The notes under the pieces were generated by a model. That model was given only the letters and a program-made list of their open reading frames with translations, was not told the DNA's origin and ran no database searches. Both the position numbers and the translations under genes were made by a program. A stretch of 63,831 nt of DNA, counting the filler, from Pelomyxa schiedti (lineage: Eukaryota; Protista; Evosea): NCBI GenBank assembly GCA_020536535.1. It is 11 parts of 11 records of this genome, joined end to end, with 100 filler letters (N's around TTAATTAATTAA, not from the genome) between each part and the next. Parts side by side here need not be neighbours in the genome. Positions count along the whole stretch, not along the records: positions 21,946 to 41,641 come from JAHLWZ010000043.1; 10 more parts are not named here. One strand, given 5' to 3'. Shown here piece after piece: positions 17,591 to 41,641 of this stretch. Positions within the stretch are counted from its first letter, which is position 1, and every line of letters begins with the position of its first letter.

Positions 17591-19736
17591 TCAATTGCGT
17601 CTATTCCTTCAACAAGTAGGTTCCAATAGTCTTCTTTGCCAGGAGCACCAGGAAAGCGGCAGCTCATACCAACAATTGCTGTGGGTTCAGTTCTGTTTCA
17701 TATAAGTTTTGAAAGGGAAAGGCAGTGCCTACACAACAGTGTCCTCACTAACTCCAGCTGTTGGTTTTATGTCATCATGAGCCAAATACTGTGAAAGCTG
17801 CTCGATATTGGGGTACTCAAACAGAAGAGTTGGCGTGAGTTTAGCGCCAATCCATGCTTCTAACTCTGCAGCAAGGGCTATTACGCTTGCTGAGGTAAGA
17901 CCAAGTGTGAAAAACGGTGCTTGTAGATCAACGTCTCCTCCCCCAAGTTTTATGGAAACTCGTCTCGCCAACCATTCTGCTATCTCAAGTGCCCTGGGAC
18001 TGAGTTGTGTAACCTGTGACAAGGTAAATAAACTTGAAAGGAACACCAAGAAACAACCTGAGGTGACTGATGTGTGGTGGCCAGCTGAGTTGGCAGAAGT
18101 GGAGATCCAAGTTGGGAAGGGGAGGTTGCAGTATGAGGAAGGGGAACTTGGCCTCCTACAGGTGACGAAGGGGTAGGAGCCGGAGTGGCTGATATTGGAG
18201 GGGTTCTGTTCCATTGAACAATGACCTCGAAAATCCTGTGGTCTTCCAAACACATTTGGCGTTGAATTTTTCCTGCTGTGCGCCGTAAAACACCTTGCTT
18301 GACCAAGAGAATACTTTCTATCTGTAAAGGAACTAAGGATAACAGTGGAAATCCTGAGGGAAAACCTGCAGGTTTAGGTCCTCTATAACTTTATGCGCTA
18401 TTTCAGCCAATACTGGAATGGCCATCTCAGGGGAAGAAAAATCAGGGGAAGCTTCAGCAACAACGACAGTATTCTTTCCATCCTCCTCTACAACAAATGC
18501 AGCAGAATCGGCTATCCCACTGAAAGAGTTCACCACTGCTTCCACATCCTTTTTTTATCAAATCAAAAAAAAAAAAAGGGAAAAACCTAAACGGTTACCT
18601 CAGGGAAGAAATATCTCCCATCAGCCAAACAGATTAAATCGCAAAGGCGGCCAAGTACAAATAACTTGTCATCATGGATGAAACCAACATCCCCTAAGAT
18701 CCGTTAGGGTGTTACGAGGAAAACACCACACACCAGTAGAAAGAGAGCGCTCTTCAAAACCCTCAAACCGAGTGCAGATAGCTGAAGGATCCCCAGACAT
18801 ATAACCAGAGGCAAGGGCACTTCCATATACCCAAATTTCACCAACATGTCCAGGTTTGCACTGAAATAAACTAAATTAACCCGCTAAGACAGTATAGGAA
18901 TGTACCTCTTCATGGGTTTTAATGTCAACAATGCATACAGAAGTGGCAGGAGGGGTTGGTGTGCCACAGCTCACAACTGAGCGTGTATCAGGACCAAAAC
19001 AGAAAGCAACATCAACTTCAAGTTTTTGTAAGGCAGAGCGGCGCACATAAACAACGCAAGGGGGGTGTGTCTGAAATTGTGTGAAAAAAGGTTAACCGGC
19101 GTTCACACAGTACATTTGATGCATTGAGACCAAGAAAGTAGCCTCTGCAATTGTATACATAGGGAGAAGAACATTTCGCTTAAGATGACAAACAGAAAAA
19201 CTTTGCCGGCATTTCTCAAGAAGAGCTGCACTAATGGAGTCTCCAGCTGGAGGAAAAGAGGATGGCATTTAGAAGAATAAAGGAAGGAATAACTTCCTAC
19301 TGATTATTGCTGTTGATAGTGAGGACAAATCAATGCGCTCCAATTCACTTGGGGGAAGACTTGAAGCTACCTGATAGGCAAACGGTGGAGCTATAGTAAT
19401 ATTCGCTTTAATTTCAGAAATCAACATAAGCCACCTGGGAAAAAACATCAGACCACCGAAGTTACAAAGATTCCCTAACCTCAGAGGGTTGGCCAAGAAT
19501 GAGACAGGTGACATTACGTATGATGCACATCCACACAGAGGCATAACCACCAGAGACAACAGCGCCATGCTTGAAGTAAAAGGTAACCAGGCAAGAAGTT
19601 TTGGCTGCTCTGCTGTAGCAGGAGTGGTATGAAGAAGCAGCCGGTTGCATACAACCCAGGCATTGTTAACAGCGGCCTCATGTCTAACAACAACTGGGCG
19701 AGGAAGCCCACATGTTCCTGAAGTGAACTGAACATA
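17591..19736 (-). CDS. Type I PKS/FAS N-terminal part: fatty acyl-AMP ligase-like adenylation domain, ACP and start of ketosynthase (partial at both ends)
   Basis: [14 protein letters not shown] (A3), WLPFTSSMA...[33 protein letters not shown] (A7/A8), RRTAGKIQR (A10), [17 protein letters not shown]...[53 protein letters not shown]. Spliced. Confidence 0.85.
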
Positions 19737-19836
19737 NNNNNNNNNNNNNNNNNNNNNNNNNNNNNNNNNNNNNNNNNNNNTTAATTAATTAANNNNNNNN
19801 NNNNNNNNNNNNNNNNNNNNNNNNNNNNNNNNNNNN

Positions 19837-21140
19837 GGACCGACCAACCTGTCGCTGGGTGTCAGTGAGTGGCACCATGCTGTCGTGCATCCTGCACTCG
19901 TGCTGATCCCCCCCTCGTGCCCCCCCTCTTGCCTCCGCCCCCCCGCCCCCGCCGCCGCCGCTGCTGGTGGCGCTAGTTGCCTGGTGCCTCCGTCCCCCCC
20001 GCCCTCCCGCTGTGTTGTTGTCGTTGCCGCTGCTGATGCTGGCGACGATCCCCCCCAGCACCCGGCGCTTCGTCGCTGTGCCCAGGGCGCGGGTGCGGGC
20101 CACGCCCCACGCAACCCCCCACCACGCCGGGGTACCACCACCACCACCACGGCCAATGACCCCCCTACTCACAGCGCTGCTGAGCATCGTGTGTCAGGTG
20201 ACTGTTTTATTGTTTAGTGGTATGAACAGAACCATCAAAAACCATCAGAGTGACAAGGAAGACGGAGTGAATTTCCCGTGGAGCACTGAAATCCAGTCCA
20301 CATTCTGCTGCTTGTGCACAGGGTTGAAATTTGAACAGGAGAGTGAGACTGACAGGACTCTTCTCCTCGTGCAATGCTCACGTAAACGATTTGAAGTTTC
20401 CAACTTGGGTGCGAAGCCGATGATCAGTGGCAACAGCGACTACGCCCGCGGCGGAGAACCCATAAGTCTGATTGCGCTAGGTTTCCACAGGTGTACCGCT
20501 AGGCGAAATACTACAGCAAGGTGATTTTCAAACATCATCAATTACTGCAAGGGAATACACCCGTTGCAGTCAAAGACAGCACTTTGTATTTGGCTTCAAT
20601 TGACGTGGAAGACAGGCTCATACAAGAGGCAGCTTACTTGCAGTAAGCAATAAACTTCTTTCCCCCATTTCTCCTCCTTTTGCTCACGGCATGATCGGAG
20701 GCGTCTTGCCATCACCACTCCTAACCAGTTGCATCTATTCATCAATATTCAATGTATTTCTTAAACTCCAAAGGGGATTATTGATACGAAAGAAAGTCTT
20801 TACCAAGTAGCCAGTTCTCCGGTAAAAAACTTGTGTGTTCCACTGCTAAAGTAAATTTAACAACACACATTAGAAAAGCTGTTTGTCCAGTTGAGGGAAC
20901 TACCTCTGGAACAAACCGCTATTCCCGAGTTCAATCCAACTCTTTTCAAGTCTTGCCCGGCATCTACCTTTGATAAGTCTGGGTTAAGGAATTGCCTCCA
21001 CCACCTAATTACGTACCACTGTCGGAAATGCTCAAAGCCAGTTTCACCATAAAGAATCTAAGAAAAAAGAAAATCCTGGCAGATGTGAGATGATGCGCGT
21101 ACACTTATTCAACAAAACATTCTTATTACTGGTGGGTAAA
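19837..21140 (+). CDS. Hypothetical multi-exon protein, 5'-partial
   Basis: GC-rich 5' block and ORF 19967-20524, followed by short exon-like segments. No domain recognised. Confidence 0.3.
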
Positions 21141-21945: not shown

Positions 21946-23908
21946 GAAGCGAGCTCGTTGGAGTACCTCTAGTTCAGGCTGCTGTCAACGGGCAACTTCA
22001 CATCATCCAGTGGCTGGTGAGCACCTTTGACTTGGATAATGATGCCACCACCAGAGTGGCTGTAGCAGATTCATTCCACCCAATGAAAGGCAGAGTCTCT
22101 GACGTGAGACGTTTCGTGGAGACCTTTCCACACTGGGACTTCAGTGAGTCTGCCAGGTCCTTGGCTGCATCAGCAGCATTCTGCAAGGGGTGCCCAGCAG
22201 ATGAGGTCATTGAGGTGTGCCAGTGGCTCAAGGATCATTTCTTGTTGAATGGTGAAGATTTCATTTCTCCAGACAGCCCAACCTCTTTGCCAAAGAGTGC
22301 AAAGGTTGTCAAGTGGGCACTCTCTGATGGTTTAACAGGTGATTATGAAATGTCCAACCTTTGGGACCTCTGTTCCTTGCATAGCGGTAATGTTGAACTG
22401 GGAAAGTGGCTTGTTGAGGAGAAGGGAGTGAGAATTGGAACCGACAGCTTTCTTCAGGCGTTTTCCTGCACTCATGACAAAGTGGAGCTTTTTGAATGGA
22501 TGTTCAAGAAACTGGGTGGTGAGTTGAGTTCCTCAGATTTGCTCGATGCACTCCACAGGGCTTTGGCCAACCCAAACCGTTTGGATTTGGTCTGCAAGTG
22601 GTTGGAGAAGCAGCTCCTCACAACGACAGGCACAAAGCCCAAAATTTCTCTCAAGGAGCTCCTTTATTGGCATCATCCTGTGGGTGAAGGCTGGCTTGAC
22701 TGGGTGTNNNNNNNNNNNNNNNNNNNNNNNNNNNNNNNNNNNNNNNNNNNNNNNNNNNNNNNNNNNNNNNNNNNNNNNNNNNNNNNNNNNNNNNNNNNNN
22801 NNNNNNNTTGGTCTGCAAGTGGTTGGAGAAGCAGCTCCTCACAACGACAGGCACAAAGCCCAAAATTTCTCTCAAGGAGCTCCTTTATTGGCATCATCCT
22901 GTGGGTGAAGGCTGGCTTGACTGGGTGTTTACCCATCACCCAGAAGCTTGTGAGATCAACTGGAGCCAATCTGAAGTGCTCACTTTGTACAAAGGGGGCT
23001 TCTTTGCACCCAAAATGGATGCTGTATTGTCCATTTGGAAGAAGTTTTCCTTGTCTCCTGTGACCCACCATCGCATCCTCATGGGACTTCTGCTCCACTT
23101 TCTGAAGCAGGGCACATCCTCAGAGATCCAGCAAGTTTTGTCCCTTGGTCAATTCTCCCGTTCTGAGATGGAGAGAGCCTTGGCGGTGTACAGTGAGGAC
23201 CCACAGTCGTCCAAGATTGTGAAGCTCTTGGTCTCCTCTGTGTTTCTTTGTGGAAGAAGAGCCACACCACAAAATAGAATTGAGAGCACACCACCAGTCA
23301 TCAATGTAGTGTTTTTCAAAATGGTTTCCAGCAACAAACGCAGCTGTGTGAGGTGGTTGTTCAACAGATTCAACATCACTCTTCCTCAGGTATTCTCCCT
23401 GTTCTCTTCTCTTTACCTGTCACTCAAACCTTTCCACTTTTGCAAAACACACACAGTTCCTTTCTGCAATTAATATTCAGTTGGAAAGTCAAGTGGACCT
23501 TGCCACATGGAAGCTGNNNNNNNNNNNNNNNNNNNNNNNNNNNNNNNNNNNNNNNNNNNNNNNNNNNNNNNNNNNNNNNNNNNNNNNNNNNNNNNNNNNN
23601 NNNNNNNNNNNNNNNNTCCCTGTTCTCTTCTCTTTACCTGTCACTCAAACCTTTCCACTTTTGCAAAACACACACAGTTCCTTTCTGCAATTAATATTCA
23701 GTTGGAAAGTCAAGTGGACCTTGCCACATGGAAGCTGCTGCCGACGCTGTTCCCAGACATCACAAGGGATGTCATCATCAACAACTTCATGGAAATTGTC
23801 GTGGCATCACCACGTCACTCACAGTTCACCACCAACAAGCTGGGTGTCACTCAGGATGACATTGAGAAGTTCCGCCTGACCCGACAACCATCAGAGAGCT
23901 CCTTGTAG
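21946..23908 (+). CDS. Degenerate ankyrin-like repeat family member, 5'-partial; contains two N gaps with duplicated flanks
   Basis: AAVNGQLHIIQWLV, CSLHSGNVELGKWLVEE, and the family C-terminal exon VDLATWKLLPTLFPDITRDVI...ASPRHSQFT. Confidence 0.8.
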
Positions 23909-23970
23909 AGTTTGTAGGAACAAGAGGTTTGTTTGTCGTTGCACTGGAGATCGACAATTGTGTGAGGCAG

Positions 23971-26304
23971 ATGAGTGCAACAAGAGGCACAGGTTGCCGT
24001 GCACCGGCGGTTACGATGTCAAACAACATAACACGCAGCCAACTACCCACGAGGATGACGACTACGAGGGAGACGGCGCTGTCGCACGCCGTGATGGTGT
24101 CGCGCGTGGTGTGGGACTCGGTGGTGGCGTGGCTCGCGCCCGAGCTGAGCGGCAGTGATGGAGACGGGGCTACGCTGCCTATGGAGCACGCGGTGGGGCT
24201 GTGCGTGGTGGGCGAGGCGCTGTTCCCGCTGAGGGGGCTCGTGCGCCGGGCCCTCGTGGCGCACACCGCCGACAAGTGGCACGTGGCCCTGCGCGCGGCG
24301 GCCGAGGCAGGGAGCGCCTCGTGCGTCGACTGGCTCGTAGCATCGAGGAGGACGGAGCGAGCGAGCGAGGAGAAGAAAGCAATGGGGTCCGTGGGCGCCG
24401 AACGAGGAGGAGAGCGAGGGAGAGGAGAGGAGATGGGGGGAGACGGGGGTGCGATGTTGGCACGGAGGAGGAGGAGGAGGAGGAGGAGGGAGAACAAGGA
24501 GTTCATGTGCGTGCTTGGGGCTGTGTGTGGGCGGGGGGAGGCTCAGAGGCTCGTGGGTGGTGGCTGGCCTGGCCTCACGTGGGAGAGTGATTTGATCCCT
24601 GGTGTTGGTGATGGAGGTGCTGGTAGAGGTAGTGGGAGTGACCTGGGGGATCATGTGAGGGGGAATCCAATTCTGTTTGGTGTGTGTGAAAGGGGACGGG
24701 TCGATGTGGCCGAATGGTTGGTCCAGAGGTTTGGGTTCAGGGACCCGTGGGAATTTTTAGTCCCACTTGAGGCTGCACTCAAAGGTGGCCACCTGGAGTT
24801 GGCCCAGTGGATTGTCAGTAGCTTTGATTTGGTGGCCGAAAAGTGCAAGAAATACAGCTCTCTCTTGGGCTTTCACTCGAAGGTGTGCAAGAGTGGGAAC
24901 CTGGAGGTTGTCAAGTGGTTCTTTGAAACGTTTCCCAAAGTGGATGCCAACAGTACTTTCAGGAGTTGCATTGAGGGAAAGAGTCTCAGCAGTGTGGAAA
25001 TCTGCAACTACGTCAGCAAGCACATTGAATTGCCTCTACATTTTGACCCCTTTGAGTGTTGCATTGGAAGACTCGATGTGTTGAAGTGGGTGATGTCTGA
25101 ATTGCCCTCCATTGATGCAAGTTTTCCGTTGGATAAAAAGATTGTAGAGGATTTATGTGGAAAAAAAGAAGCACTCGAGCTCATCAAGTTCTTTGTGGAA
25201 GGCAACTTAGTCGTTGCAACGCCAGCACTATTACTCAGAGCCTGCAGCAACTTAAAAGATAACACTGAACTAGTGAAATGGTTGTCAACAAGAGTGTCAC
25301 TTTCACAGGAGGATATTGACAACTCATTTGTTGCTGCGTTGGCCCACAGCAACACATCAATTGCATCATGGTTGGAAGATTCTCACCACATCTTGGAACG
25401 GCATAAGGAAGCTGCAGATTCCGCACAACTGCTTGGGAGGCTGTGTGAAAGGATTCCCTGTTATGCAAGAAGAAGAACAGCTGGCTTGAAGTGGCTCCTG
25501 AACCGCTTGGATACCAAATCTATCCCTTCTGATCAAGCAGTGGACTGTGTTGGTGACCTTCTAGAGAACTGCGAGTCAACCAGGGCAGCCCTCCTTCTTC
25601 TTGACAAGTTCCCAATGATCCCCAAAAAGGCAAGATCAGAACTCCTCACACTTACTCTCAGGCAAACCATTTGGGATGATTGTCTCACACAAGTAAAAAG
25701 GATTGTAGCCATGATGATGGACTGCAGCAATGGGTTCACCAAGGATGAGATTGCGAGGTGCCTTTCAAGTGCAACTAGTGCAGTATCCAGCAAAACAGTG
25801 AAGTGGCTTATCACACATTTTCAACTTGAACGGGAACACATCATAGCCGACAACAACAACATCCTGTGCAAACTGCTTTCATGGGGACAAGAGTGCTGTG
25901 CAGAGTGGCTCATAAACAAGTTCAACATCACATTTGATGAGGTAAAACTCCCCTTACTCATTAAATCTCCCTTTTCTCTTTGCTTATAATTCCTCTCTAT
26001 GATGCCTTTCAGGTTTTGAGGTTGTCATGGGTACAACTCCAACAATAGTTGATGCAATGTTGATTTTTGTTAGGTTTCCTCATCACTTTTCCGGTTTGAC
26101 TTTGCCACATGGCAGATGATGGTTGAAGTTTTCTCAGGCATCACAGCCACCATCATCAAGCAGAAGTACCTCAAGCTTGTGTGCCATTCACCTGTCATTG
26201 CACATTTCACACTGAGGCAGTTCCCTGATGTTACAATGGAGGACCTTCTTGCCTTCGGCAGGACTTATGAAGGATATTTACCGTTATGGTTACCAATTGG
26301 CTGA
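23971..26304 (+). CDS. Degenerate ankyrin-like repeat family member (exons about 23971-25941, 26013-26030, 26074-26304)
   Basis: N-terminal cassette VSRVVWD...HAVGLCVVGEALFPLRG...AAAEAGSASCVDWL, repeats CERGRVDVAEWLV, ALKGGHLELAQW and CKSGNLEVVKW. GT-AG introns keep the frame. Confidence 0.85.
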
Positions 26305-26440
26305 ATAAAAAAAACACCATACCGCCGATGACAACGAAAAAACGAGCGTTCCGGTCTGATGATTATTTTAAATTAAGTACACTTCCAAGAACTCCTTGTT
26401 CGGCTTTTTTCTTTGAACTCGTACTCATCAAAGTGTCCCG

Positions 26441-29148
26441 GTGATGGCTGCGACGAAGCGCCACGCTGACGACAGCAACAGCTCCTACGTGGGGTCCCTC
26501 GTCGAGCAGGCCAACGCAGGCAACGCCAAGGCGATGCGCGACCTAGCCCGCTGCTACCACTACGGCACCCGCGGCGTGGCCAAGTGCCTGGACCGCGCCA
26601 GCGACTGGTACCGCGCCGCGCGCGACGGCGGCGGCCTGTGCTTCGTCGGCCGCGAGTACTACAACGACGGCGCCGCGGGCACAAGCCGCCGCCACGTGGA
26701 CAAGGCGGTGTCGGCGTGGACCACGGCTGCCGTCGAATTCGGCGACCACTGGGCCATGGTGTGCCTTGCGTGGTGCTACAGTCGCGGCGTGGGCGTGGAG
26801 CGCGACCTGCCGAGGGCTGTGGCGCTCTACGAAGGCGCGATCAGCGGCGGGTCCAAGGCGCACTCGTGGTGGCTCGGCGCGTGCTATCTGCGCGGCGACG
26901 GGGTGGAGAGGGACTGGGGCAGGGCCGCGGGGCTCATGCAGCGGGCCGGGGACGACGGCGACGCGCAGGCGTATCTCGGGTGGTGCTATTTGTGGGGCGA
27001 TGGTGGTGGCGGCGGTGGCGGAGTGGAGAGGGACGTGGCGAAGGCTGTGAAGCTGCTCAGCAGCGCTGCTTCGGTGTTTGTGTCTAGTGCGAGGGCGAGG
27101 GTGTTCCTTGGGTATTGCTATCAGATGGGAATCGGGGTTGAGCGGGATGCAAAGTGGGCTGGTGAGCTGTTCAACAAGGCCAAGGGCTCGGCACCATGGG
27201 ATGCAGCGGCACTTGGGGAGCTCGGGGAGTTTTGTCAGAGGGGTGACTGCGGAGCACCAACAGACAAGAGAGCTGCTGCTGGATACTTCCAGATGGGTGC
27301 TGATGGTGGTGATCCAGTTTCAATGTTTCACCTTGGTGTGTGTCTCAGGGATGGTGACGGTGTGGATTGTGATCCAGAGCGGTCACACCACTGGCTGGTA
27401 AAGGCTGCCGAGCTCAGGCACAGAGGTGCAGCCAAGATCCTCTCTTCTTTATCAATCGAAGGGAAGAACAAGTCAGCTCAACAACAAGATATTGTTGGTT
27501 CACTGGAAACAATTTTGAAGGAACAGGAGCTCCCTGCAGGAGTGGCACATTCTGAAGAGGGGCGTAAGAAATCTGAAAGTATACAGGGACAAATCGTTGC
27601 GGAAAATCTGAGGAAACACCTCACAGAAGAAGAGGAACACAAGGTTTCTCCCTCCTTTTCCACATCACTTAAGAACACAATCATAAATCAAATCAGACAA
27701 TTGTGAACAAAATGATTTCACTGATGTCAGCAACTGTTGGTGATTTTTCCGTAGAGAAACTGATTGGAACAGGCTCAAATGCTTCTGCTGTTTTCCAAGT
27801 GCAATACCAAGCCACAAGAACAACGATGTCAGTGACTTCATGTATGAATGCTTCTGCTTGTTCAGAAACAAAGACTGAGATGGTGATGAAGATCATTTTC
27901 AACTGGGAGAACACACCACATGTGAGGAAATACATGGCCGAGTGCGTTGTCCTCTCACTGGTTCCAAATCACCCAAATGTTATCCACGCTCTTGGTGCCT
28001 TGATCATCCCATGGTATTTCTTCTTGTTTTTGTATTTTTCAATTTCAATAAAATCAACACATTGGTTTTTACTGCACAGCCTTCCAGCTGAGTTTGTGGA
28101 AAAATTACCAAGTGGCAACAAGGAGTCTCTCAGGGAACTCTGCAACAAACAATCGTTGGCCATCCTCATGCCCCATTGTGGGGTCACCCTTTCATCATTC
28201 ATCCTCTCTTCCTCCAGGAATCACACAACAGCCCAAGTTGTACAGAATCTGCTTGTTCAAGCACTCAAGGCCATCTGCCACATTGAGTCACATTTTGTTG
28301 TCCACAGGTTTTGTGTTCCCTAGCTTCAATGCCCGAATTTGTAACAAACACACCAACAAACACAGGGACATCAAGGGAGACAGCATTCTTGTTGATCCAG
28401 AGACTGGAAAACTGACATTGATCGACTTTGGTGAAGCACAGCACTGTCCAAACATGGAGATGATGGTGTCAGCCACAGCACAAGCATGGGGAAACACAGG
28501 CACCATACCACCAGAGCTGAGCATGTTCCTCCAGAGGATGACAACAATTGATGCCAGTGGTGTGTTCTCATACTCAAAGTGTGACTCTTTTGCCCTCGCC
28601 CTCACTTTCTACAATGCACTTCTACCACCTGATCACAAGTTCATTGGGCACCATCACATGAACCGTGACATGAGTGCATTCAACACCCAGTCACTCCGCA
28701 GAGAGTTCCCTGTCCCTTTGTTTTCGTCATCAGCATCAGCACAACTGTCAGCAGAATTGCAAGCACAACCAACACCAACAGCAACAAAACGGCTACGCCA
28801 TAGCAACAGCAGGAGCACAATCANNNNNNNNNNNNNNNNNNNNNNNNNNNNNNNNNNNNNNNNNNNNNNNNNNNNNNNNNNNNNNNNNNNNNNNNNNNNN
28901 NNNNNNNNNNNNNNNNNNNNNNNGAGTTCCCTGTCCCTTTGTTTTCGTCATCAGCATCAGCACAACTGTCAGCAGAATTGCAAGCACAACCAACACCAAC
29001 AGCAACAAAACGGCTACGCCATAGCAACAGCAGGAGCACAATCACGGAGCAACCCCTGCTTCTTGAGTCAGTGATGATTGGAATGATGATCCCTGAAAAA
29101 GCAGCCAGGCTCTGTGCTGCTGGTGCCATCGAGGCACTCACTTCTTGA
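26441..29148 (+). CDS. Sel1-repeat / protein kinase fusion (introns 27644-27696, 28014-28079, 28308-28365)
   Basis: Removing the 53-bp GT-AG intron joins the Sel1 ORF in frame to the kinase: IGTGSNASAV, VMKII, HRDIKGDSIL, IDFGEAQ, GNTGTIPPE, SKCDSFAL. Confidence 0.85.
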
Positions 29149-29331
29149 TCTTGGGAATGGAGTTCGGTGGGAATCGTAAGCAAGAGAAAAATCAATGGCC
29201 CCGCTCAGAATCGAACTGAGATCAAGAGAGCCAAAATCTCCCATACTAACCATTATACTACGGAGCCTCAGATTTCTGTCATCCCAATCACACCAGTTTT
29301 CGGCGGCCTCTGGTTTTCTTGCTCTGGTCTG

Positions 29332-29403
29332 AACGAGATAACTCAGAGGAAGAGTATTGGACTTCGGATCCAAGGGTCGCAGGTTCGATCCCTGCACAGC
29401 GCG
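29332..29403 (+). tRNA. tRNA-Arg(TCG)-like gene with unpaired acceptor stem (possible pseudogene)
   Basis: D stem ACTC/GAGT, anticodon arm TTGGA-CTTCGGA-TCCAA, T arm GCAGG-TTCGATC-CCTGC, and a T5 run downstream. The 5' strand AACGAGA pairs with 3' ACAGCGC at only 1 of 7 positions. Confidence 0.55.
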
Positions 29404-29418
29404 GATAATTTTTAGTTT

Positions 29419-30780
29419 TCAGTCGAGGGAGATACCCTCTTGTGACACAATGAGAGCAGAGGGGCAGAACTCGCCCCACAGGGTTGTGTCACTTCTAGTC
29501 ATCATCAGTGTTACAATTGGACATCCGTTTCCTGTAACCGTTATCTGGGATTCTCCGTGGTGGGAGAACAAGGCCATGCTGCCACCAAACCTGAATCCAC
29601 ATACATCTTTCAGGGGCTTTCTTCTCAGGAGGGTGCCTTCCACAGGTTTGTTGACATCACTGACAACAGAATCAGTATCAGTCTGAAGGAGAAATTGAGA
29701 GCACCCAACTTTGAAGATTGTAGAAAACTCAATAAGTGGTAATGTAGAACCAGAGTCCATTGAGTACAGCCATGCCTTCTTTCTTTCCTGGAGGGTACTG
29801 GATTCCACCACAACGACAAAGGCAGAGCCACTGTCAGACCAGCACACTGCTGGAAAATACTCATGGACGTGCCTCTGTAAGACGAGGCGCTCTATTATCT
29901 TCTCAAATACCAAGGTGTGACTCTGATAGGTCCTTTCCAAATCGAGGTCACTCAGCTGCAGCCACGACACCCTCTTATTCTCCAGGCGTGATACGCCCCT
30001 CAATGCAGGCATATCCGCATTGCCAGATGATCCTTGCCTGAAGTGCCAGTCATTTGTGTGCCTGCTCAAATCGATGTGAAGCTGGATTGTTGTGTGTGGC
30101 TCCCCTGGTAACGTGCCCTCGACCTTCCAAATGTGCATTTCACTGACACCATCACGCCTGCCATCATCAGTCACAGCCACAATCCACTCTGGGCTACATG
30201 CCACCCTGATTCCCGAGATGGCTGCATGAAATGTGAAATCCCACGCCCCGGTCCTGTTCCCATAATCCGCCTTCTCAGTGCCATCACCGTCGCCAAACGG
30301 GAGGGAATTCCAAGCGCTACTATCCTCGGGGTCATCCATCCCATGATCCATTCTGAACAGCCTCCTGCCTGTGGTAGGGCGCAACCAATCAGTTTCCAGG
30401 AACAGCAGCACCGAGGACGAGCTGTCGAGCCTCCCGACGAGGGACAGCGACCCGCAGCGGGTGTCCATCACCCTCGGGGGCGAGCACACGCCCCCGCCGT
30501 GGCGCGAGACGCGGAGCCACACAAGCTGCGTGACCAGCGAGTCGTCGCGGTCGCTGGACGAGGCCAGGGCTACGGCGCAGGCCGCCGGGGGAAGGGAGGC
30601 GCCGCGGCCGTGGCGGCGGCCCAGCAGCCAGAGGCAGATCTCGGCGACGAGGGGCGGAGAGAGCAGCGAGCCGAGGAGGGAGTGGGAGCCGCAGCGTGGC
30701 ACCAGCGCACAGAGCAGGGCTCGGGCCTGCGACCATGCGTCGACATGAACGTGGATCTCCGTTGCGGATTTGAGTGACGT
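29419..30780 (-). CDS. Hypothetical protein with DAWSQARALLCALVPRCG N-terminal family motif; start uncertain
   Basis: Open frame 29419-30702 extends further upstream without an in-frame ATG. Beta-rich body. Confidence 0.6.
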   Translation of the reverse strand, partial: TSLKSATEIHVHVDAWSQARALLCALVPRCGSHSLLGSLLSPPLVAEICLWLLGRRHGRGASLPPAACAVALASSSDRDDSLVTQLVWLRVSRHGGGVCSPPRVMDTRCGSLSLVGRLDSSSSVLLFLETDWLRPTTGRRLFRMDHGMDDPEDSSAWNSLPFGDGDGTEKADYGNRTGAWDFTFHAAISGIRVACSPEWIVAVTDDGRRDGVSEMHIWKVEGTLPGEPHTTIQLHIDLSRHTNDWHFRQGSSGNADMPALRGVSRLENKRVSWLQLSDLDLERTYQSHTLVFEKIIERLVLQRHVHEYFPAVCWSDSGSAFVVVVESSTLQERKKAWLYSMDSGSTLPLIEFSTIFKVGCSQFLLQTDTDSVVSDVNKPVEGTLLRRKPLKDVCGFRFGGSMALFSHHGESQITVTGNGCPIVTLMMTRSDTTLWGEFCPSALIVSQEGISLD

Positions 30781-30856
30781 GGTGCTTCGGGAGTTCTCAG
30801 GGTTCGTGAGAAGAAATTAGTTGTGATGCTTCTGCGAACGGAAACAGGCCGAAGAG

Positions 30857-33712
30857 ATGCAGCTTGGTGCTGGGGCGTCAGTTCTCGGCCGGATCTACGA
30901 CTTGTTGTCGGGGCGAAGATCCCCTCCCAAGGACGGCAATGACGATAGTAACAACAATAACAGTAAAGAGCAGTGTCGTAACATGGGGGGTGACCGGCCA
31001 ATGTCGCGGCACGCCGAGGTTCTTTTTGTAGCACTCAAACGTGCTCACAGGGTATTGTTCTCTGTTTTTTGTTTTTTGTTTTTGTGTTTTTTGTTTTTGT
31101 GTTTTTTGTTTTTTGTTTTTTTGTTTTGTTTATCATGTGGCGCTTCTTAAGGAGGCCATACTTGGAGTCGAGAAAACGAGACTATCTGTTCAGAACAGCA
31201 GGGAGCGATTGGAAGTGCTCGACAGGAGGCTACACGCTCTGTCGTACACGCATGCCCACTTGCAATCACAGATATCTGGTTGCCGGATGGCTGGGTATGC
31301 CATTTGTAACATTGCCATCATACATTTTCATTTTGACCGTGTGGTGCCAAGGTTCCTTGCTTCTTCCATTTCGAAGCTGGCACCAGATAGTGTTTTTTTC
31401 AAAAGCAGTCTTGCACTGCAACTCCCATCACCACTGAATGTGCAACCGCCGTCGCCAACAACTTCTCCAACTGATGTGCACCTTTACACAAAGGCACGTC
31501 TGACTTTTGAACTTGAATACCGGAAGAAGTACCTCCCTCCACCCTCTCACTTTTTTTTTCCTCCTCTCTCTTATCAATTTGGTTCCTCCTGTTTTATGCA
31601 AAAGATTGTTGGAACAATTGGAAGAAAGGAGAGCAAGGAAAAAAGCCCTCACTGAAATGCTCGCAGTCAACAAACGCTTCTTGATCTCAATCCCAGAATT
31701 AATCGGCAAACTCAAGCAAGATGCTCAGCAAGGGTCCCAGAGCTTCTCCGTCACCGTTCTTCCAACAGCCCATGTGAATTCCTGCTTTTTACTTCCGCCG
31801 GCACTTTACACACTGTACACGAACATTTGGTCTTATGTCACAGCAAAAGGTAAGAGATCGTGCTGCACACGCTTCTTCTTACTCCCGGCTTTCTATCAAT
31901 CACTCACGAATACCGAAATAAGGTAGACTCGGATTTGACTGTCAGGATTATTGAAAGGAAACCGGAGGTTGGTGATATCACCAATACACCAGATTTAAAC
32001 ACATTGTATCCCCTTAACTTGAAGTGTTTAGACAACATGTGTGAGCCCTTACACGGTGGCACTTGAAATAACATCTGGTATAATCATCATTATTATTGAT
32101 TGCCACCACCACATTTCCATTCCTGTTACTCCGTCTCAACAACGTTTACTACCACTCAGAGATCAAGGTCACAATCTCTTTCGACCTCGTTGACTGTCAA
32201 TCTGGTAACACACTTCCAAGTCTTCTTGTAGCTCCTTCCTCACCTAACAACAACGCAAAGTGCCAGTCTGCAGTTGTGTCTGCAAGTCTTGCTGCCAGTC
32301 TGGGGGGAAGAAGATTTCCGTGACTTTGGTTTTCCCATCAGCAAACACAAGTTCACAGTTCTCATTTGGGACTACTTTTCTGCTCAGTAACATATTCACG
32401 GGTGACCCAGGGTTATCAACTGGGTCTGGGTAAGGTTTCCATCACTTCGCAACAACTCGTGACCTTTTTGCCCACCAAGGAATTCGCAGCTTTTTATGTG
32501 GGCACAGTGGCTATCTGGGCTGCACAGTTCTCCTTTTGAGTGCCGTGATTCCATGGTGGAGGAAACATTGAAGAGATTGAAATGGAGACTGAAGGCACTC
32601 TCTTCCTTGTCAACACAGTTGAGTTTATTACGTACGTACGAAAACAAAAACCTTTGCACCACTGAAATAAATCTCAATGATGTGAGAACAGTGAAGGGAA
32701 CAATTCTCCAAATTCCCAATTTTCCAAAAACCGGAACAGTGCTGTCGAGCTTCACTGAAATTCTTGAGGTGTTAACCCTATTTACTTTTTAATTATATCA
32801 CCCATTAACTGATTTACAATCAAAAAGACACAACCTCCTGCTGTTGCACCAAGTCAACCTTCCACTGCGGTACCCCCTCCACGCTCACCATCACCCAATC
32901 CCTCTGTTGATCTTACAACATCGGAAGCACTTGTAGAGGATGGCGAACTCACTTGCGGTGCACCTCCTCCACCACCGCCTCCGCCGCCAAAGCCAGTCAC
33001 GCGGAGTACCACACCTCCCCCTTCTTCTTCACACACCGTAATACCGCAGCTGTCTTCGTTACAAAGGGTGCGAAGTTTCAGAGCAGTACTCACTTGCAGT
33101 AATAGTATGCCGCCTGCCACTTTTCAACAACTAACTAACACTTGAAGGACAAATGGAATGTGTCATCGAAATTACACCCCAATATCCAGTCATTTCTCCG
33201 CAGTGGTCTATCAAGCTGGGATCGATAACCGGAAACGCTTCCGCTACGGGGTTACAGTCTCCGCCCCGGCCACCTCTTTCACCGGCACATAAACTCACCC
33301 AGATAACCTCACCTCTGTCGTCTCCGCTTCTTTTCGATAACGCTCTGAAGGTTACTCCCCATCCTATCTAATAGGTGTAACCCATTGGCCTCACGATTGC
33401 CAGGCAATTGAAGTGAGTATCAACTCATTTGGCAAGGATGTTTCAAACTGGTATTGCACCAAAGCCAACTTGCTCTTGACGCACCAGCTCCGAAGTCTCC
33501 AAGTTTGTTCCCCTCTTTTTCATTCTTTCCATAACCCTACCGCTATTTATATTTACCATACCCGGCCAGGTTTTACTGGATTCCTATGTGGAAAGGTATT
33601 AAATTTCTGAATGCGTCTTTCAAGTAAGTAACCCTACAACAGCAACAAAGCAACGAGATGCGGCCGTGACCGGCACTTGATTATTGACAATACCACATTC
33701 CAAGTGGAATAG
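30857..33712 (+). CDS. THOC5: THO complex subunit 5 homologue (multi-exon)
   Basis: Exon peptides LKRAHR...LHALSYTHAHLQSQISGC, ARLTFELEYRKK, LLPPALYTLY, FMWAQWLSGL, IEITPQYP and C-terminal CGRDR occur in THOC5 motif order. Confidence 0.72.
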
Positions 33713-33826
33713 ATACAGAGTGCGGTAACCATTACTAGTGAAACTCGAAGCCAATACCACCGAAAAACACCCACAAACACCTTTTGTTGTTTTTCATTGA
33801 CAAAATATCAAATCAAAAGAAAAAGG

Positions 33827-36110
33827 ATGGCAGCAACGTCGCCAACGGCAACGACGCTGACGTGTAACAGCGTCGGCGTACCAGCAACCACCACGACTCC
33901 GACTACGAGGGAGATGGCGCTGGAGCGCGCCGTGATGGTGTCGCGCGTGGTGTGGGACGCCGTCCTCGTGCCCTGGCTCGTGCCCAAGCTCCGCCGTGGG
34001 CGCCACCACCCCCTGAGGATCAAGCACGCGGCGACGCTGTGCGTGGTGGGCGAGGCGCTGTTCCCGCTGAGGGGCGTGGTGCTCAGGGCACTCGTGGCCC
34101 CTCCCAACAAGTGGCACGTGGCCCTGCTCGCGGCGGCGGAGGCGGGGAGCACCTCGTGCGTGGACTGGCTCATCGCATGGAGGAGGATGGCGAGAGAGAG
34201 CGAGGCGGGGACGGAAACCGAGGGAGGAGTGGGAGAGGGAGGAGGAGCAAGCCAGAGAATGATGATGGTGATGGGCAGGACGAGGAGGAGGAGGAGGGAG
34301 AACAAGGAGTTCATGTGTGTGCTTGGGGGGCTGTGTGTGGGCGGAAACCTGGAGGACGCTCAGAGGCTCGTTGGAGGGGGCTGGCCTGGCCTCACGTGGG
34401 AGTCAAACAGGGAACAGAATATTGGCGTTGGCGGCGTGGAGGAGAGAGGAGGGCGAACAGGAGCAAATTACTGGGGGGAGCAGGAGCTGGCTGAAAACGT
34501 GAGGGCTTGTGGAATTTTGAGGGGGGTTTGTGAGAGGGGGTGGATGGAGGTTGCCAAGTGGTTGATTCAGAGGTTTGGAATCAAGGATCCGTGGGAATTT
34601 GTTCAGCCACTTGGATCTGCTCTGGCCGGTGGTCACCTGGAGTTGGCTCAGTGGATGGTTGACACCTTTGATTTGGTGCCAAGGTTCAATAGATACAGCT
34701 CTGTGGACTTTCACTCAAAGGCGTGCAAGAGTGGGAACCTGGATGTTGTCAAGTGGTGCTTTGAAACGTTTCCTCATGTGGATATCTACAGTACTGTCAC
34801 AGGTTGCATTGGGGGAAAGAGGAGCAGCAGTGTTGAAATCTGCAACTACGTCAGCAAGCACATTGAGTTCCCTGATGATCTTGACCCCTTGGAGGAGGGT
34901 AGCATCAGAAGGCTTGATGTGCTGAAGTGGGTGATGTCTGAACTGCCTGCTGTTGACGAAAGTGTTTCCATGGAAGTTGTGGAGGACTTCTCTAGAAAAA
35001 GTGAAGGAATTGAGTTCATCAAGTTCTTTGTGGAAAGCAACTTAATCACAGTAACACCAGCGCTCTTCCTCACAGCCTGCAAGAACTTCAAAGATAGCAC
35101 ACAACTGAAGTGGCTGTCAACTAGGTTGTCACTTTCACAAGAGGATATTGACAATTCGTTTGTCACCGCATTGGGCCACAGCAACACATTGATTGCGTCA
35201 TGGTTGGAAGATTCCCACCACATCTTGGAACGGTATAAGGGAGTCACAGCTGCAGGGCAGCTCCTTGTGAGAGTGTGCAAAGGAATTCCTTTTTTCAGAG
35301 GAGGGGTTGCAGGCCTGGAGTGGCTTCTGAGGCGGCTGGATTTCACTGGTACCCTTCAGCATCAAACAGGGTTTGTTGTTGACGGTGTGAGAGAGCTTTT
35401 GATCAACCCGAAGTCAACGAGGGCGGCAAGCCTGCTCCTTGAGAAGTTCCCAATGATCTCTGAACAAGACAAGTCAGAACTCCTCACACAGGCCCTCAGA
35501 GAAAGCATTCAACGTGATTCTCTCCAACAGGTACAAACGATTGCATCCATGGTGGAGAACAACATCCATGGGTTAACCAAGGAGTCTGTCTCAAAGTGCC
35601 TTTTATGCCCAGTTGGATTTCACTCCAGCAAAGCAGTGAAGTGGCTGATCACACACTTTCAACTGCAACGGGAACACATCACAGCTGACAACAACAAGAT
35701 CCTGTTCAAACTGATTTCGTGGGGACAAGAGTGCTGTGCAGAGTGGCTCATCAACAGGTTCACTATCACGTTGGAGGAGGTAAAGGCACCCGCAACCTCA
35801 CATCACTTTCTGACTGGTTCGTGTGTTTTCTTTTCAGGTTTTGAGGTTGTCCTGGGGCCCCTCTTCATTCCTCCTTGTTGACTTGGCGACATGGCAGATG
35901 ATTGTTGAGGTGTTACCAGGTATCACAGCTGACAACATCAAAGAGAAGTTCCTGAAGCTCGTGTGCCATTCACCTGTCATCACACAGTTCACACTGAGGC
36001 ACTTCCCTGATGTGACTATTCAGGACATCACCGACGTATGTATTCCCCGTGCTGAATATTATCTAGGGTGCTGGCTGATAGACACCAACCATCGATACAT
36101 TTTTCCTTGA
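33827..36110 (+). CDS. Degenerate ankyrin-like repeat family member (intron 35780-35837)
   Basis: Same N-terminal cassette, repeats and DLATWQM...CHSPVI...FPD terminal exon as 23971-26304. Confidence 0.85.
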
Positions 36111-36204
36111 AATCCAATAACTTTTTTTCCGACGTGCACGCAATGATGACTGGCTCAATCTGGCTACAGTTGGAGGCACCGAAAAACGCAACACAAAGCA
36201 CAGA

Positions 36205-37782
36205 ATGACAACACCCGAACTCAACACAACAGCAACATCGACGGCACAACACGTGTTGGACAACGACAACAGCGGCGCCCACCACCACCACCACGACACC
36301 CACGCCCAGCAGCAGCAGCAGCAGCAGCAACAGCAACCCCGCAGCGGCGGGGGCGGCATGGCTACGACGATAAGGAGGAGGGTGACCCTGTGGCCGCGGG
36401 AGATCCCCACCGCGTCGCAGGAGAAGGCGCAGGGGCAGGGGAGGGGCGGCGCCGCGCGCAGCGGGCGGCCGCCGTTGCTGCACTACAGTGGCCCCCCAGG
36501 GACAGCAGCAAACTGGGGGACAGGAGCGGGAGCGGGTGCCGGGCGCGGCGGTGGTGGGGGAGGGGGTGTTACGATTGTTGGGGGGGGACTTGGTGCGGGA
36601 GTTCCTGTGGTGTGGAGGGAGGGGGCGCAGGGGGTGGTGCGCGGCACAACGACGATGCCGGTGCCGCGGGGGGATGTGATCGGCCCGCCGATGCAGGTGT
36701 CACTGATGCATCAGGAGCAAGAGCGGCGCGGCTGCGGGGGGGGCTCTTATGGCCCCGCGGCGCGGTTGTGGAGTCAGCGGCACAATTCAGCTGTGTATTC
36801 TTATTGTGGCGGTGGTGGTGGTGGCGGTGGACAGCAGGCTGTGGTCACAGGGTTGTATTTTCCGGTGTGCAGTGTTGGAACAGGGAAAGGAACCTTGAGA
36901 AGAAGGGCATCTTATGGAGACTCCTTCAGTTCTTTTGGACATCATGGTTCCTGTTCTTACATTTTTTAAATACCCGTTCTTTACTCACATGAACATAGAT
37001 GCAAACTTTCCTGAGGGCTGGAAGGAGAGCACCGGCATAAAGACTACTCCTGCGAATGGTATTGAACATTCTCGCCCAATAAAGCGGCGCAGGTCTATCT
37101 CGCCTGCAGTGCACGAGATGGCTCTTACAACAGATGATATCTTCAACTTGTTAAGGTACAAATATTTTTTCCTAACTTCATCCGATTTTATTATTCTTTA
37201 CAGAGACATAAAGGACCCAGATTGTATTGAAAACTCCCTTGAAAGTTCCCACATAATTTGCCGGTGTGAAATTTAATTATAAAAATTGCACTGCCATAAT
37301 AACGTATCCGCAGTGACCTGATCAAAGTCGATTCCCGCACTGGAATTATTCAAGTGGGGATTCTTCCCACATGCCAAACCACGAACGTTGCCCTTGTGGG
37401 ACTGTGCATCAGAACCCGCCTGGACCAAGACCTCATCCTCCCTCTCACTCACAAAGTTGACCTCATTGTATTCCCTCCTCCCTCCCTCAACAAAAACGCC
37501 GAAAACAACAACACTAACAGCAGCAACAATCCACCTGATAAACAACAAGTGCTCTCTTGCACGTCCTATGGTACTACTACTGCTACTAGTAGTAGCACAT
37601 GCCAAGCACAACAAGTCACAACACCAACTCCTAATTCCCATAATCATCATCATGATGATTTGTGGCCGCAGTACAAGAAGCACTGCCAGCACCCCCTCAC
37701 CAAGCAGCTCAACGATAAAGAGCGAGTCGCAGCAGCAATGGAACAACAACCCCTCTTGGTTGCAGTCCTCAGTCTGCTCTGA
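36205..37782 (+). CDS. Hypothetical low-complexity protein (poly-H/Q/G), multi-exon
   Basis: ORFs 36205-36969, 36914-37276 and 37354-37782 are collinear, with a GC-rich 5' part. Confidence 0.5.
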
Positions 37783-38249
37783 TCACCAGATCTCCAACCC
37801 AAACGGTTTTAGTTGTAGGAAAAAACAACTTTGGGACTCACACTAGGGGGTTTTTGGTACAAAAAACGAAAATCTGTTCCAAAAAGTACTTTTTTTCTGT
37901 GAATTTCTGTGGCCTGTGGTTTTGTCACAGGGTGCGAGGCATGTGGTTGTCAGAGCTTGTTGTAACATGGACAACTAAATATTATTGTCACAACCAGCAA
38001 CAGTAATGACTGAAAACCAAGGTCTTTTTTTTTCTGGACCAGGGCACTTTTTGGGCAAAAAAAATTCCTTTCTCCCTTCAGGGCACAGAGACTGCTGCAG
38101 GACCAAGCACATTTTCTGGTCCACCCTTTGGGCCAGGTAAATCCAAAAGAGCAGATTTTTCCATCCACCCACGACTGAGAACAACACTCTGAACGAATTT
38201 TTTAGTGTGAGTCCCAAACTTTGTTATTTCAAATAATCCACGAAAGGGA

Positions 38250-40440: not shown

Positions 40441-40513
40441 TTATGTGTTGTTTGGGTGGTATAAAAAGTAAAAAAATAATCAATGGCTGTGATGCCTGGG
40501 AACACAGTCAAAT

Positions 40514-40936
40514 GTCTGAACCCTTAAAGGTTTTTCTTCTTTTAGGGCTGCCGTAGTTTTTTTTTTCTGGGGGAGGGGGTTTTTACGGGGGGTCAGTCGA
40601 AGGATCAGTATCTGTTGGGGCTCTCGTTCTTTGGGGGGCTTCCATGTCTTGGGGTTATATTGGTTTTAATTCTTTTTTTATCCCTGGGGTCGGGTGGGGG
40701 GTTTTCGAGGCAGAGAGGTACCCGTAGGGGGTGCTGCATTTTTCCCATGGGGTTTTACATTTTTGTGGGGTGCTTCGCCGTGGGGGGATTCGCTGCCCGC
40801 ACCCCCGGAGCAAGGGGCGGGCAGGCTTCGACGAATTTGTTTTCTTTGGGTCTCCTCGTTTTGGGGTTTTTTTTTATCTTTTTCCCTGGGGTCGGGTCTT
40901 GGGGGGTCTCGTTGTTTTTTTTTTTGGGGGGGGGGG
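40514..40936 (-). repeat. Inverted, internally deleted copy of the 41742-43548 subrepeat array end
   Basis: 40514-about 40700 is the reverse complement of about 43365-43548. The rest matches other modules of the array. Confidence 0.9.
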
Positions 40937-41036
40937 NNNNNNNNNNNNNNNNNNNNNNNNNNNNNNNNNNNNNNNNNNNNNNNNNNNNNNNNNNNNNNNN
41001 NNNNNNNNNNNNNNNNNNNNNNNNNNNNNNNNNNNN

Positions 41037-41641
41037 ACGCCGTCCTCGTGCCCTGGCTCGTGCCCAAGCTCCGCCGTGGGCGCCACCACCCCCTGAGGAT
41101 CAAGCACGCGGCGACGCTGTGCGTGGTGGGCGAGGCGCTGTTCCCGCTGAGGGGCGTCGTGCTCAGGGCACTCGTGGCCCCTCCCAACAAGTGGCACGTG
41201 GCCCTGCTCGCGGCGGCGGAGGCGGGGAGCACCTCGTGCGTGGACTGGCTCATCACATGGAGGAGGATGGCGAGAGAGAGCGAGGCGGGGACGGAAACCG
41301 AGGGAGGAGTGGGAGAGGGAGGAGGAGCAAGCCAGAGAATGATGATGGTGATGGGCAGGACGAGGATGCAGAGGAGGAGGAGGGAGAACAAGGAGTTCAT
41401 GTGTGTGCTTGGGGGGCTGTGTGTGGGCGGAAACCTGGAGGACGCTCAGAGGCTCGTTGGAGGGGCCTGGCCTGGCCTCACGTGGGAGTCAAACAGGGAA
41501 CAGAATATTGGCGTTGGCGGCGTGGAGGAGAGAGGAGGGGGAACAGGAGCAAATTACTGGGGGGAGCAGGAGCTGGCTGAAAACGTGAGGGCTTGTGGAA
41601 TTTTGAGGGGGGTTTGTGAGAGGGGGTGGATGGAGGTTGCC
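41037..41641 (+). CDS. Partial ankyrin-like family copy, nearly identical to 33957-34558 (allele or recent duplicate)
   Basis: Only a few substitutions and a small insertion relative to the 33827 gene. Bounded by a gap and a linker. Confidence 0.75.

Follow-up and report, generated by a model that had tools for sequence, protein, structure and literature searches.

CpG islands at gene starts and CpG-depleted gene bodies in the archamoeba Pelomyxa schiedti: a compositional footprint suggestive of CpG methylation

This study focused on a 19,696-base piece of the genome of Pelomyxa schiedti (Archamoebae), contig JAHLWZ010000043.1 of assembly GCA_020536535.1, which occupies positions 21946–41641 of a 63,831-nucleotide stretch of joined contig parts (the window, whose coordinates are used below unless a locus label is given). 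Genes on this contig begin in G+C-rich islands, where CpG is about as frequent as base composition predicts, and then pass into bodies that are poor in CpG and rich in TpG and CpA. Seven further P. schiedti loci with called genes were added (labels L001–L008, local coordinates), giving 146 kb in total on eight contigs, and across this sample the pattern is genome-wide and not confined to multicopy genes. We consider its probable cause to be CpG methylation, present or recent, which covers gene bodies, transposons and the DNA between genes but leaves a zone at the gene starts unmethylated. P. schiedti is a free-living anaerobic archamoeba with a 52.4-Mb draft genome, for which 7.43 introns per gene have been reported (PMC8887013).

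Islands were defined with a 200-bp sliding window as regions of at least 300 bp with a G+C fraction (GC) of at least 0.5 and a ratio of observed to expected CpG (o/e) of at least 0.75. Seven were found:

23852–24596, island A: 745 bp, GC 0.64, 69 CpG, o/e 1.00; start of ankyrin paralog A
26312–27212, island B: 901 bp, GC 0.65, 107 CpG, o/e 1.15; start of the Sel1-repeat protein kinase (Sel1-kinase) gene
30228–31080, island C: 853 bp, GC 0.61, 80 CpG, o/e 1.00; divergent promoter region and both 5′ ends
33732–34380, island D: 649 bp, GC 0.62, o/e 0.93; start of ankyrin paralog B, within a fused gene model
36098–36923, island E: 826 bp, GC 0.64, o/e 0.82; start of a low-complexity hypothetical gene
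38130–39006, island F: 877 bp, GC 0.64, o/e 0.93; start of ankyrin paralog C
41037–41465, island G: 429 bp, GC 0.67, o/e 0.78; 5′ side cut by the scaffold gap at 40937–41036

Of the 775 CpGs in the piece, 474 (61%) lie in these islands, which cover 28% of its non-N bases. Pooled, the islands have GC 0.64, CpG o/e 0.96 (474 observed, 491 expected) and GpC o/e 1.08, and the remainder has GC 0.47, CpG 0.42 (301 observed, 718 expected), TpG 1.34, CpA 1.50 and GpC 0.91. In 300-bp windows the gene starts reach GC 0.70–0.74 and CpG o/e 1.1–1.3, while the bodies show GC 0.41–0.50, CpG o/e 0.12–0.4, TpG and CpA o/e 1.3–2.0 and GpC of about 0.7–1.2. The 5′ edges of the islands lie 100–200 bp upstream of the ATG; the 3′ edges lie 540–770 bp into the long first exons, and about 220–240 bp into both genes of the divergent pair at island C. 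In length (429–901 bp), GC (0.61–0.67) and o/e (0.78–1.15) they agree with the sequence-based definitions of a CpG island (at least 200–500 bp, G+C at least 0.50–0.55, o/e at least 0.60–0.65), and they also stand in CpG-depleted surroundings with an excess of TpG and CpA, which is the second mark of such islands. Simple repeats were ruled out as their cause, only short GGA, CAG and 17-mer arrays being found.

An earlier reading of this DNA by hand counting (the original prediction) had proposed CpG-island-like gene starts with CpG-depleted bodies. Its counts were exact, with 21 CpGs in 26521–26640 (GC 0.75, o/e 1.25) against one in 27421–27540 (o/e 0.16) for the Sel1-kinase gene, and 13 in 24121–24240 against two in 25201–25320 for the ankyrin gene, and the sliding-window scan found an island at every place within the piece where it had seen a switch. 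It had also allowed that some stretches are less depleted, as is seen at about 31000–33700 (o/e 0.5–0.98).

Base composition does not account for the CpG pattern. GpC, made up of the same two bases, stays flat, and in 400-bp windows of GC 0.45–0.55 the CpG o/e ranges from 0.28 to 0.95 (10th–90th percentile). A pure GC gradient, or GC-biased gene conversion and nothing else, needs a corrected CpG o/e that is flat, and was rejected on the pooled island and non-island values given above; the original prediction had named such flatness with GC controlled, and no TpG/CpA excess, as the outcome that would count against it, and what was found is an o/e that is not flat and TpG and CpA in excess. The codons agree. 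In four long exons the GC at third codon positions (GC3) is 0.86–0.94 over codons 1–100 and drops to about 0.5 further along the same exon. The proportion NCG/(NCG+NCC) in their bodies is 0.34, versus 0.57 for NNG/(NNG+NNC) in control codons (fourfold degenerate, with no C at position 2), and in the 5′ parts it is 0.65 versus 0.60. At the junction of codon positions 3 and 1, the bodies have C|G at an o/e of 0.24, T|G at 1.70 and C|A at 1.76, and the 5′ parts have C|G at 1.12. Fungal repeat-induced point mutation, which predicts an excess of TpA and a deficit of CpA, was also rejected: the multicopy bodies have TpA of 0.15–0.4 and CpA of 1.4–1.9, and single-copy genes are affected too.

Over the whole 146 kb, GC is 0.477 and o/e values are 0.62 for CpG, 0.95 for GpC, 1.27 for TpG, 1.30 for CpA and 0.57 for TpA. 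All 16 NCGN contexts are depleted (0.31–0.57), as expected of a plain CG-specific enzyme, and in low-CpG windows the deficit of 2550 CpG is covered by an excess of 3659 TpG plus CpA. The comparison of CpG o/e with distance from the ATG, which the original prediction had called for, was made on 50 genes from the eight contigs, and gave a median of 0.97 within 200 bp of the ATG on either side versus 0.49 at +600 to +1600 (Wilcoxon p = 4.8e-10), with the start above the body in 42 of the 50 and no significant difference in GpC. For the 39 genes outside the ankyrin and Sel1 families, which are mostly intron-rich, the values are 0.95 and 0.51 (p = 2e-7), with GC of only 0.50 at the start versus 0.44 in the body. 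Using start codons as proxies for transcription start sites (TSSs), 36 of 55 annotated ATGs fall inside islands, compared with 13.2 ± 3.1 for random positions.

An account without any methylation could be built on the GC differences themselves. It would combine GC-biased gene conversion at gene-start hot spots with a context-dependent bias of mutation or repair elsewhere, unrelated to 5-methylcytosine (5mC). Grasses, yeast and birds are known to have promoter-centred recombination together with 5′–3′ gradients of GC; the steep fall of GC3 within single exons of the family genes fits such a process, less than half of the GC difference is explained by CpG retention, and the GC of first and second codon positions (GC1 and GC2) is also raised in the 5′ parts of the family genes, pointing to a general GC-ward pressure. 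It is nonetheless unlikely, since the bodies are depleted specifically of CpG and not of G+C (GpC 0.9–1.0), NCG is down relative to NCC with no G/C shift in the control codons, CpGs are replaced by CA and TG between paralogs (see below), and the genes outside the families show nearly the full CpG difference with little difference in GC. We know of no 5mC-free process that gives an o/e of 0.2–0.5 with a sharp, promoter-centred recovery.

Divergent gene pairs commonly share an island. The original prediction had the pair at island C separated by 200 bp or less (about 30780/30857), which did not hold, as the annotated ATGs at 30468 and 30857 are 388 bp apart and 30780 is the upstream end of an open frame, not the minus-strand ATG. 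Its more general claim, that close divergent pairs sit in CpG-rich patches, was borne out on other contigs, where six pairs 50–163 bp apart each have one common island (L001 7894/7975, L002 9935/10001, L006 9885/10001, L007 2413/2577, L007 6559/6610 and L008 7774/7847). Depletion is also found outside genes. Upstream of the starts, the metagene bins from −800 to −400 have CpG o/e of 0.45–0.6, and among the eight genes with no peak of CpG are some predicted in a transposon-like stretch of 5.5 kb (L008 500–6000, o/e 0.13–0.5). A remnant of a BED-zinc-finger/hAT-like transposase (L008 71–2483 and 500–6000) belongs to this CpG-poor DNA, and a DDE_3 transposase fragment that has been merged into a DnaJ gene model (L002 8529–8945) lies in DNA with an o/e of 0.26–0.4; neither has an island.

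These flanking and transposon sequences bear on a different kind of explanation, in which selection disfavours CpG (and UpA) in mature mRNA or body codons and favours CpG motifs or GC-rich codons towards the 5′ end because they help initiation, shape mRNA structure or exclude nucleosomes. The depletion of TpA alongside CpG in the long exons (0.15–0.4; T|A junction 0.37) recalls the avoidance of CpG and UpA in RNA, and the 5′ parts do encode conserved protein sequence. Selection of this kind is very improbable as the cause: the upstream and 3′-flanking DNA, the intron-rich genes and the decayed transposon stretches are depleted too, the islands start upstream of the ATG and are common to divergent genes, and constraint on the sequences is weak, the amino-acid identity of the ankyrin paralogs (58–67%) being lower than their nucleotide identity (72–77%).

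The way in which the assembly was made also had to be considered, as it was obtained from seven phi29-amplified single cells and scaffolded by RNA-seq with P_RNA_scaffolder (PMC8887013). The piece contains four gaps of exactly 100 N each (22708–22807, 23517–23616, 28824–28923 and 40937–41036). That the pattern is an artefact of amplification, assembly, scaffolding or contamination is hardly credible, however, as amplification would not alter dinucleotides according to gene position, and the pattern recurs on eight independent contigs with ordinary eukaryotic genes (THOC5, TELO2, HAT1, Rad4 and IF-2B).

Direct evidence on the fate of CpGs came from five ankyrin paralogs, three in the window and those of L007 and L008. 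Their lower identity at the amino-acid level indicates weak constraint and fast protein evolution. In all of them CpG o/e falls at one common alignment position. Beyond it, in the bodies, CpG is the least kept of the 16 dinucleotides, at 0.23 (TpA 0.27, the others 0.48–0.66; pairwise comparisons, which are not independent of each other), and 244 of the 410 non-retained comparisons (60%) have CA (133) or TG (111) in its place. CpGs in the islands are kept at 0.54, which is mid-range, and are replaced about equally by GG, CC, CA and TG. Counted by alignment column, 74 of the 90 body columns with CpG in any copy have TG or CA in another and just one has CpG in all five, whereas 12 of 83 island columns are conserved in all five. 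Lineage-specific transitions in the bodies affect four of seven ancestral CpG sites versus 37 of 278 non-CpG C/G sites (p = 0.009), a comparison in which polarity was set by majority rule and the small counts, with only seven ancestral CpG sites, carry little power; in the islands the figures are 4 of 45 CpG sites versus 4 of 86 others, which is not significant. The direction is clear all the same: CpGs are hypermutable to TpG and CpA in the bodies and not at gene starts, and remained so after the family expanded. Concerted evolution of the 5′ parts was considered and is unsupported, as paralog identity is 0.76–0.79 over the first 120 codons versus 0.68–0.77 in the bodies.

The original prediction had suggested methylation of gene bodies, or of multicopy genes, with protected promoters. 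This is supported in part, strongly as regards the footprint in composition and evolution. The codon contexts and the body-specific transitions that spare the starts favour its first part, but the pattern is not special to multicopy genes, and two limits must be set on the interpretation: CpG is also scarce upstream and in other DNA outside the islands, and CpG retention cannot produce the GC3 of about 0.9 in the islands of the family genes.

The paralogs bear equally on the age of the process. The composition could be a relic of ancestral methylation that P. schiedti has since lost, much as Entamoeba lost DNMT1, and has not yet relaxed. Composition relaxes slowly once methylation is gone, DNMT1 has been lost within the Archamoebae (Entamoeba has DNMT2 only), and the enzyme in P. 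schiedti is as yet hypothetical. We consider a relic unlikely, given that the exchange of CpG for TG or CA postdates the divergence of the ankyrin paralogs (23–28% at the nucleotide level) and is still the dominant fate of body CpGs, and that the boundaries are still sharp in every paralog.

Both the composition and the exchange between paralogs point to 5mC as the cause of CpG loss. CG-specific cytosine methylation would then extend over most of the nuclear DNA, including gene bodies, intergenic DNA and transposon remnants, and deamination of 5mC to give TpG and CpA, faster than other mutations, would have lowered the bulk CpG o/e to about 0.4–0.5. A zone at active gene starts, from around 100–200 bp upstream of the ATG to 200–770 bp inside the gene, or roughly the first few nucleosomes, would remain unmethylated, and CpGs there would have no raised mutation rate. 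An indirect sign of this is that CpG matches the stability of the other dinucleotides in the islands (0.54) but not in the bodies (0.23). The outcome would be a compact-genome version of CpG-island promoters, in which divergent gene pairs have one unmethylated island in common. The enzyme responsible may be of the DNMT1 maintenance type, and could be kept out by permissive chromatin downstream of the TSS, marked by trimethylation of histone H3 lysine 4 (H3K4me3) and possibly by N6-methyladenine (6mA). In protists with gene-body 5mC, H3K4me3 and 6mA are found on the first post-TSS nucleosomes of active genes, where in prasinophytes 6mA takes the place of 5mC (PMC12695648); a nucleosome zone of this kind fits the 200–770 bp length of the islands. 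The original prediction had looked to Dictyostelium and Entamoeba, which have only Dnmt2, for comparison, a choice that holds for Entamoeba histolytica (DNMT2 only) but passes over a closer free-living relative, the archamoeba Mastigamoeba balamuthi, for which four DNMT1-class genes are listed (PMC12344493 Suppl. Table 1). Given its phylogenetic proximity to Mastigamoeba, P. schiedti may have such an enzyme.

Several points weigh against methylation as the explanation, or limit how far it reaches. No gene for a DNA methyltransferase or an SRA, MBD or CXXC protein was found in the 146 kb, the proteome not having been searched for them. CpG depletion on its own is also found in some genomes without 5mC. 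The genome data, including nanopore reads, derive from phi29-amplified DNA, the reference points are start codons rather than mapped TSSs, and all of the sampled contigs were reached through one gene family. TpG o/e is 1.3 inside the islands too, and CpG o/e over 400-bp windows of the 146 kb is unimodal with a right tail and not cleanly bimodal. If island CpGs decayed to the level of the bodies, GC would fall from 0.64 to about 0.57, not to 0.47; CpG decay is too small for the GC difference, which means that methylation is not the whole story and that the islands of the family genes need a further GC-raising force. The obvious candidate for the source of their GC3 of about 0.9 is GC-biased gene conversion at promoter-proximal recombination sites. 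Finally, methylation in Acanthamoeba is confined to few CpGs (1.3%), is repressive and includes the promoters of its targets (PMC12344493), so a near-global pattern in P. schiedti would be unlike it. Apart from the table in PMC12344493, a limited literature search found no paper on either Pelomyxa or Mastigamoeba that mentions DNA methylation, DNMTs or CpG depletion; the Mastigamoeba genome paper does not mention methylation, and the supplements of PMC11244446 include neither Pelomyxa nor Mastigamoeba.

The genes and other features of the contig are as follows:

About 22017–23473: distant ankyrin-like gene, 3′ part
24055–26304, plus strand: ankyrin paralog A (Pelo_649), annotated model of 696 aa, first exon open to 25989; body CpG o/e 0.16–0.41
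26444–29148, plus strand: Sel1-repeat protein kinase gene, annotated model of 748 aa, first exon 26444–27706 with kinase exons downstream; body CpG o/e 0.12–0.47
29196–29267, minus strand: tRNA-Gln(TTG) gene, between the 3′ end of the Sel1-kinase gene and the minus-strand hypothetical gene
29288–30468, minus strand: hypothetical gene of 378 aa, minus partner of the divergent pair, first in-frame ATG at 30468
30857–31926, plus strand: THOC5-like gene, 5′ exons, intron-rich; the annotated model continues and is fused with the next ankyrin gene
33827–35881, plus strand: ankyrin paralog B, long open exon of 684 codons from the first ATG; body CpG o/e 0.19–0.47
36205–36969, plus strand: hypothetical gene, first open exon, low-complexity N-terminus (poly-Q, poly-G)
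38250–40151, plus strand: ankyrin paralog C (Pelo_653), long first exon of 633 codons; body CpG o/e 0.12–0.52
41039–41641, plus strand: fourth ankyrin paralog, cut by the contig end, 53% identical to residues 37–228 of paralog C

The ankyrin-repeat family has four to five members here, all on the same strand (24055–25989, 33827–35881, 38250–40151, 41039–41641 and 23021–23392). The first exon of the ankyrin genes is very long, at about 1.9 kb, in contrast to the wealth of introns elsewhere in the genome. The open reading frame (ORF) of 633 codons at 38250–40151 matches "hypothetical protein Pelo_653 [Pelomyxa schiedti]" at 100%, and relatives of the family gave 31 matches among 5.8 billion proteins, all from P. 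schiedti. If the 100-N gaps are RNA-seq read-pair joins, transcripts would span the distant ankyrin-like gene, the Sel1-kinase gene and the fourth paralog, and the family genes would be expressed. Protein searches were done exon by exon, and the exons of conserved genes on the added loci are each under 160 aa. Pfam scans of the small ORFs in 31000–33800 and 36900–37850, and of a 613-codon ORF on L001, detected THOC5 only. This last ORF (18652–20493, minus strand) is unannotated, starts in a 1.8-kb island (19135–20912, GC 0.60, o/e 0.94) and probably represents a gene that the annotation missed, from a further lineage-specific family.

The annotated 1622-aa model at 30857–36304 merges the THOC5-like gene with ankyrin paralog B, and the internal island at 33732–34380 places the real start of the second gene inside the fused model. 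Internal islands in long models of L002 (11149–11760) and L003 (15442–16177) suggest further fusions; from its annotated start, the long model of L002 has an ORF of only 330 codons. Islands have a practical use: they point to true gene starts and show where the current annotation has fused neighbouring genes, and they could help to split such models.

Some smaller features were also seen. The 3′ edge of island C has a T-rich (TTGTTTT)n array of 77 bp (31055–31131), some 200 bp downstream of the ATG of the THOC5-like gene and probably in its first intron. A weak CpG patch (29258–29564, o/e 0.72) covers the 5′ end of the tRNA-Gln gene and its upstream flank. Just downstream of the CpG peak, the coding strand of the family genes has a GC skew of +0.3 to +0.5 (24200–24950, 26700–27450, 34200–34950 and 38450–39200), which recalls the R-loop-forming CpG-island promoters of humans; these stretches coincide with Gly/Arg/Glu-rich low-complexity linkers, and the skew is absent from the metagene of other genes. 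TpA is very rare in the long exons (o/e 0.15–0.4, T|A junction 0.37, versus 0.57 over the 146 kb), with TpA-poor stretches at 24650–26250, 27250–28800, 34450–36000 and 39050–40500. It is poorly kept between paralogs (0.22–0.27), and avoidance of in-frame stops does not explain the deficit.

It is possible, and we put it forward tentatively, that CG methylation in P. schiedti is dense and near-global and leaves true CpG-island promoters unmethylated, much as in vertebrates, in a unicellular genome of 52 Mb. Such a methylome, judging by the repertoire listed for Mastigamoeba, would presumably be kept by DNMT1-class enzymes alone. It would be the first of its kind in Amoebozoa, and would imply that a CpG-island architecture develops in any genome that combines global CG methylation with compact promoters. 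What would be new is the lineage, the genome architecture being a known one, and the proposal draws on about 146 kb reached via one gene family. Many eukaryotic lineages have independently lost cytosine methylation. That the Acanthamoeba methylome is sparse and repressive has encouraged the idea that 5mC in early eukaryotes lay on transposons and silent genes and not on gene bodies, and an archamoeba with a footprint of widespread CpG methylation would be a contrasting data point within Amoebozoa, in the very group of Entamoeba, which has only Dnmt2. A footprint in Archamoebae would also date the loss of DNMT1 on the Entamoeba lineage, and P. schiedti, small and gene-dense as a system, would lend itself to studying how promoters escape methylation.

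Among known systems, the islands recall those of vertebrates, being 0.4–0.9 kb long with GC of at least 0.6 and o/e of about 1, centred on gene starts and shared by bidirectional pairs. As in vertebrates, bulk DNA has a CpG o/e of 0.4–0.5 with an excess of TpG and CpA, and the family genes have positive GC skew downstream. Unlike vertebrate genomes, that of P. schiedti is compact, with a gene every 2–4 kb and intergenic gaps of 50–400 bp, and islands occupy about 24% of the sequence and lie mostly within coding sequence, where they push GC3 up to 0.9. Loss of CpG is less severe than in mammals (0.62 overall), and the organism is a unicellular, anaerobic amoebozoan.

Gene-body methylation in invertebrates and plants offers a second parallel, as the bodies are CpG-depleted with an excess of TpG and CpA and the start region is spared. 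The mosaic form of those lineages does not match the 146 kb sampled: in it, intergenic DNA, transposons and many genes are unmethylated and CpG o/e among genes is bimodal, whereas in P. schiedti the distribution is unimodal, and nearly all bodies, the flanks and the transposon-like DNA are depleted. The methylated genes of that type are broadly expressed, while the most depleted genes here are lineage-specific and multicopy, not housekeeping. Grasses have 5′–3′ gradients of GC3, attributed to GC-biased gene conversion where recombination occurs near promoters, that are similar to the fall from about 0.9 to about 0.5 over the first 600–700 bp of coding sequence in the P. schiedti family genes; a pure GC gradient, however, would leave CpG o/e flat, whereas here it shifts three- to five-fold with GpC o/e constant, and ordinary P. 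schiedti genes switch CpG with almost no GC gradient.

Acanthamoeba castellanii, an amoebozoan with DNMT1 and DNMT3, has CG-specific methylation aimed at young transposons and silent or viral-derived genes, and affecting 1.3% of CpGs and 2.4% of genes, target promoters included, with no gene-body methylation (PMC12344493). The transposon-like stretches without islands in P. schiedti resemble this repressive role, but its footprint implies that most of the genome is methylated and the promoters spared. Micromonas, Ostreococcus, Chlorella and Amoebidium, protists with gene-body 5mC, are, like P. schiedti, unicellular with compact genes, and the length of their post-TSS zone of H3K4me3 and 6mA matches the 200–770 bp seen here; in Amoebidium 5mC and 6mA coexist in that zone, and the prasinophytes use DNMT5 and have nucleosome-linker periodicity (PMC12695648).

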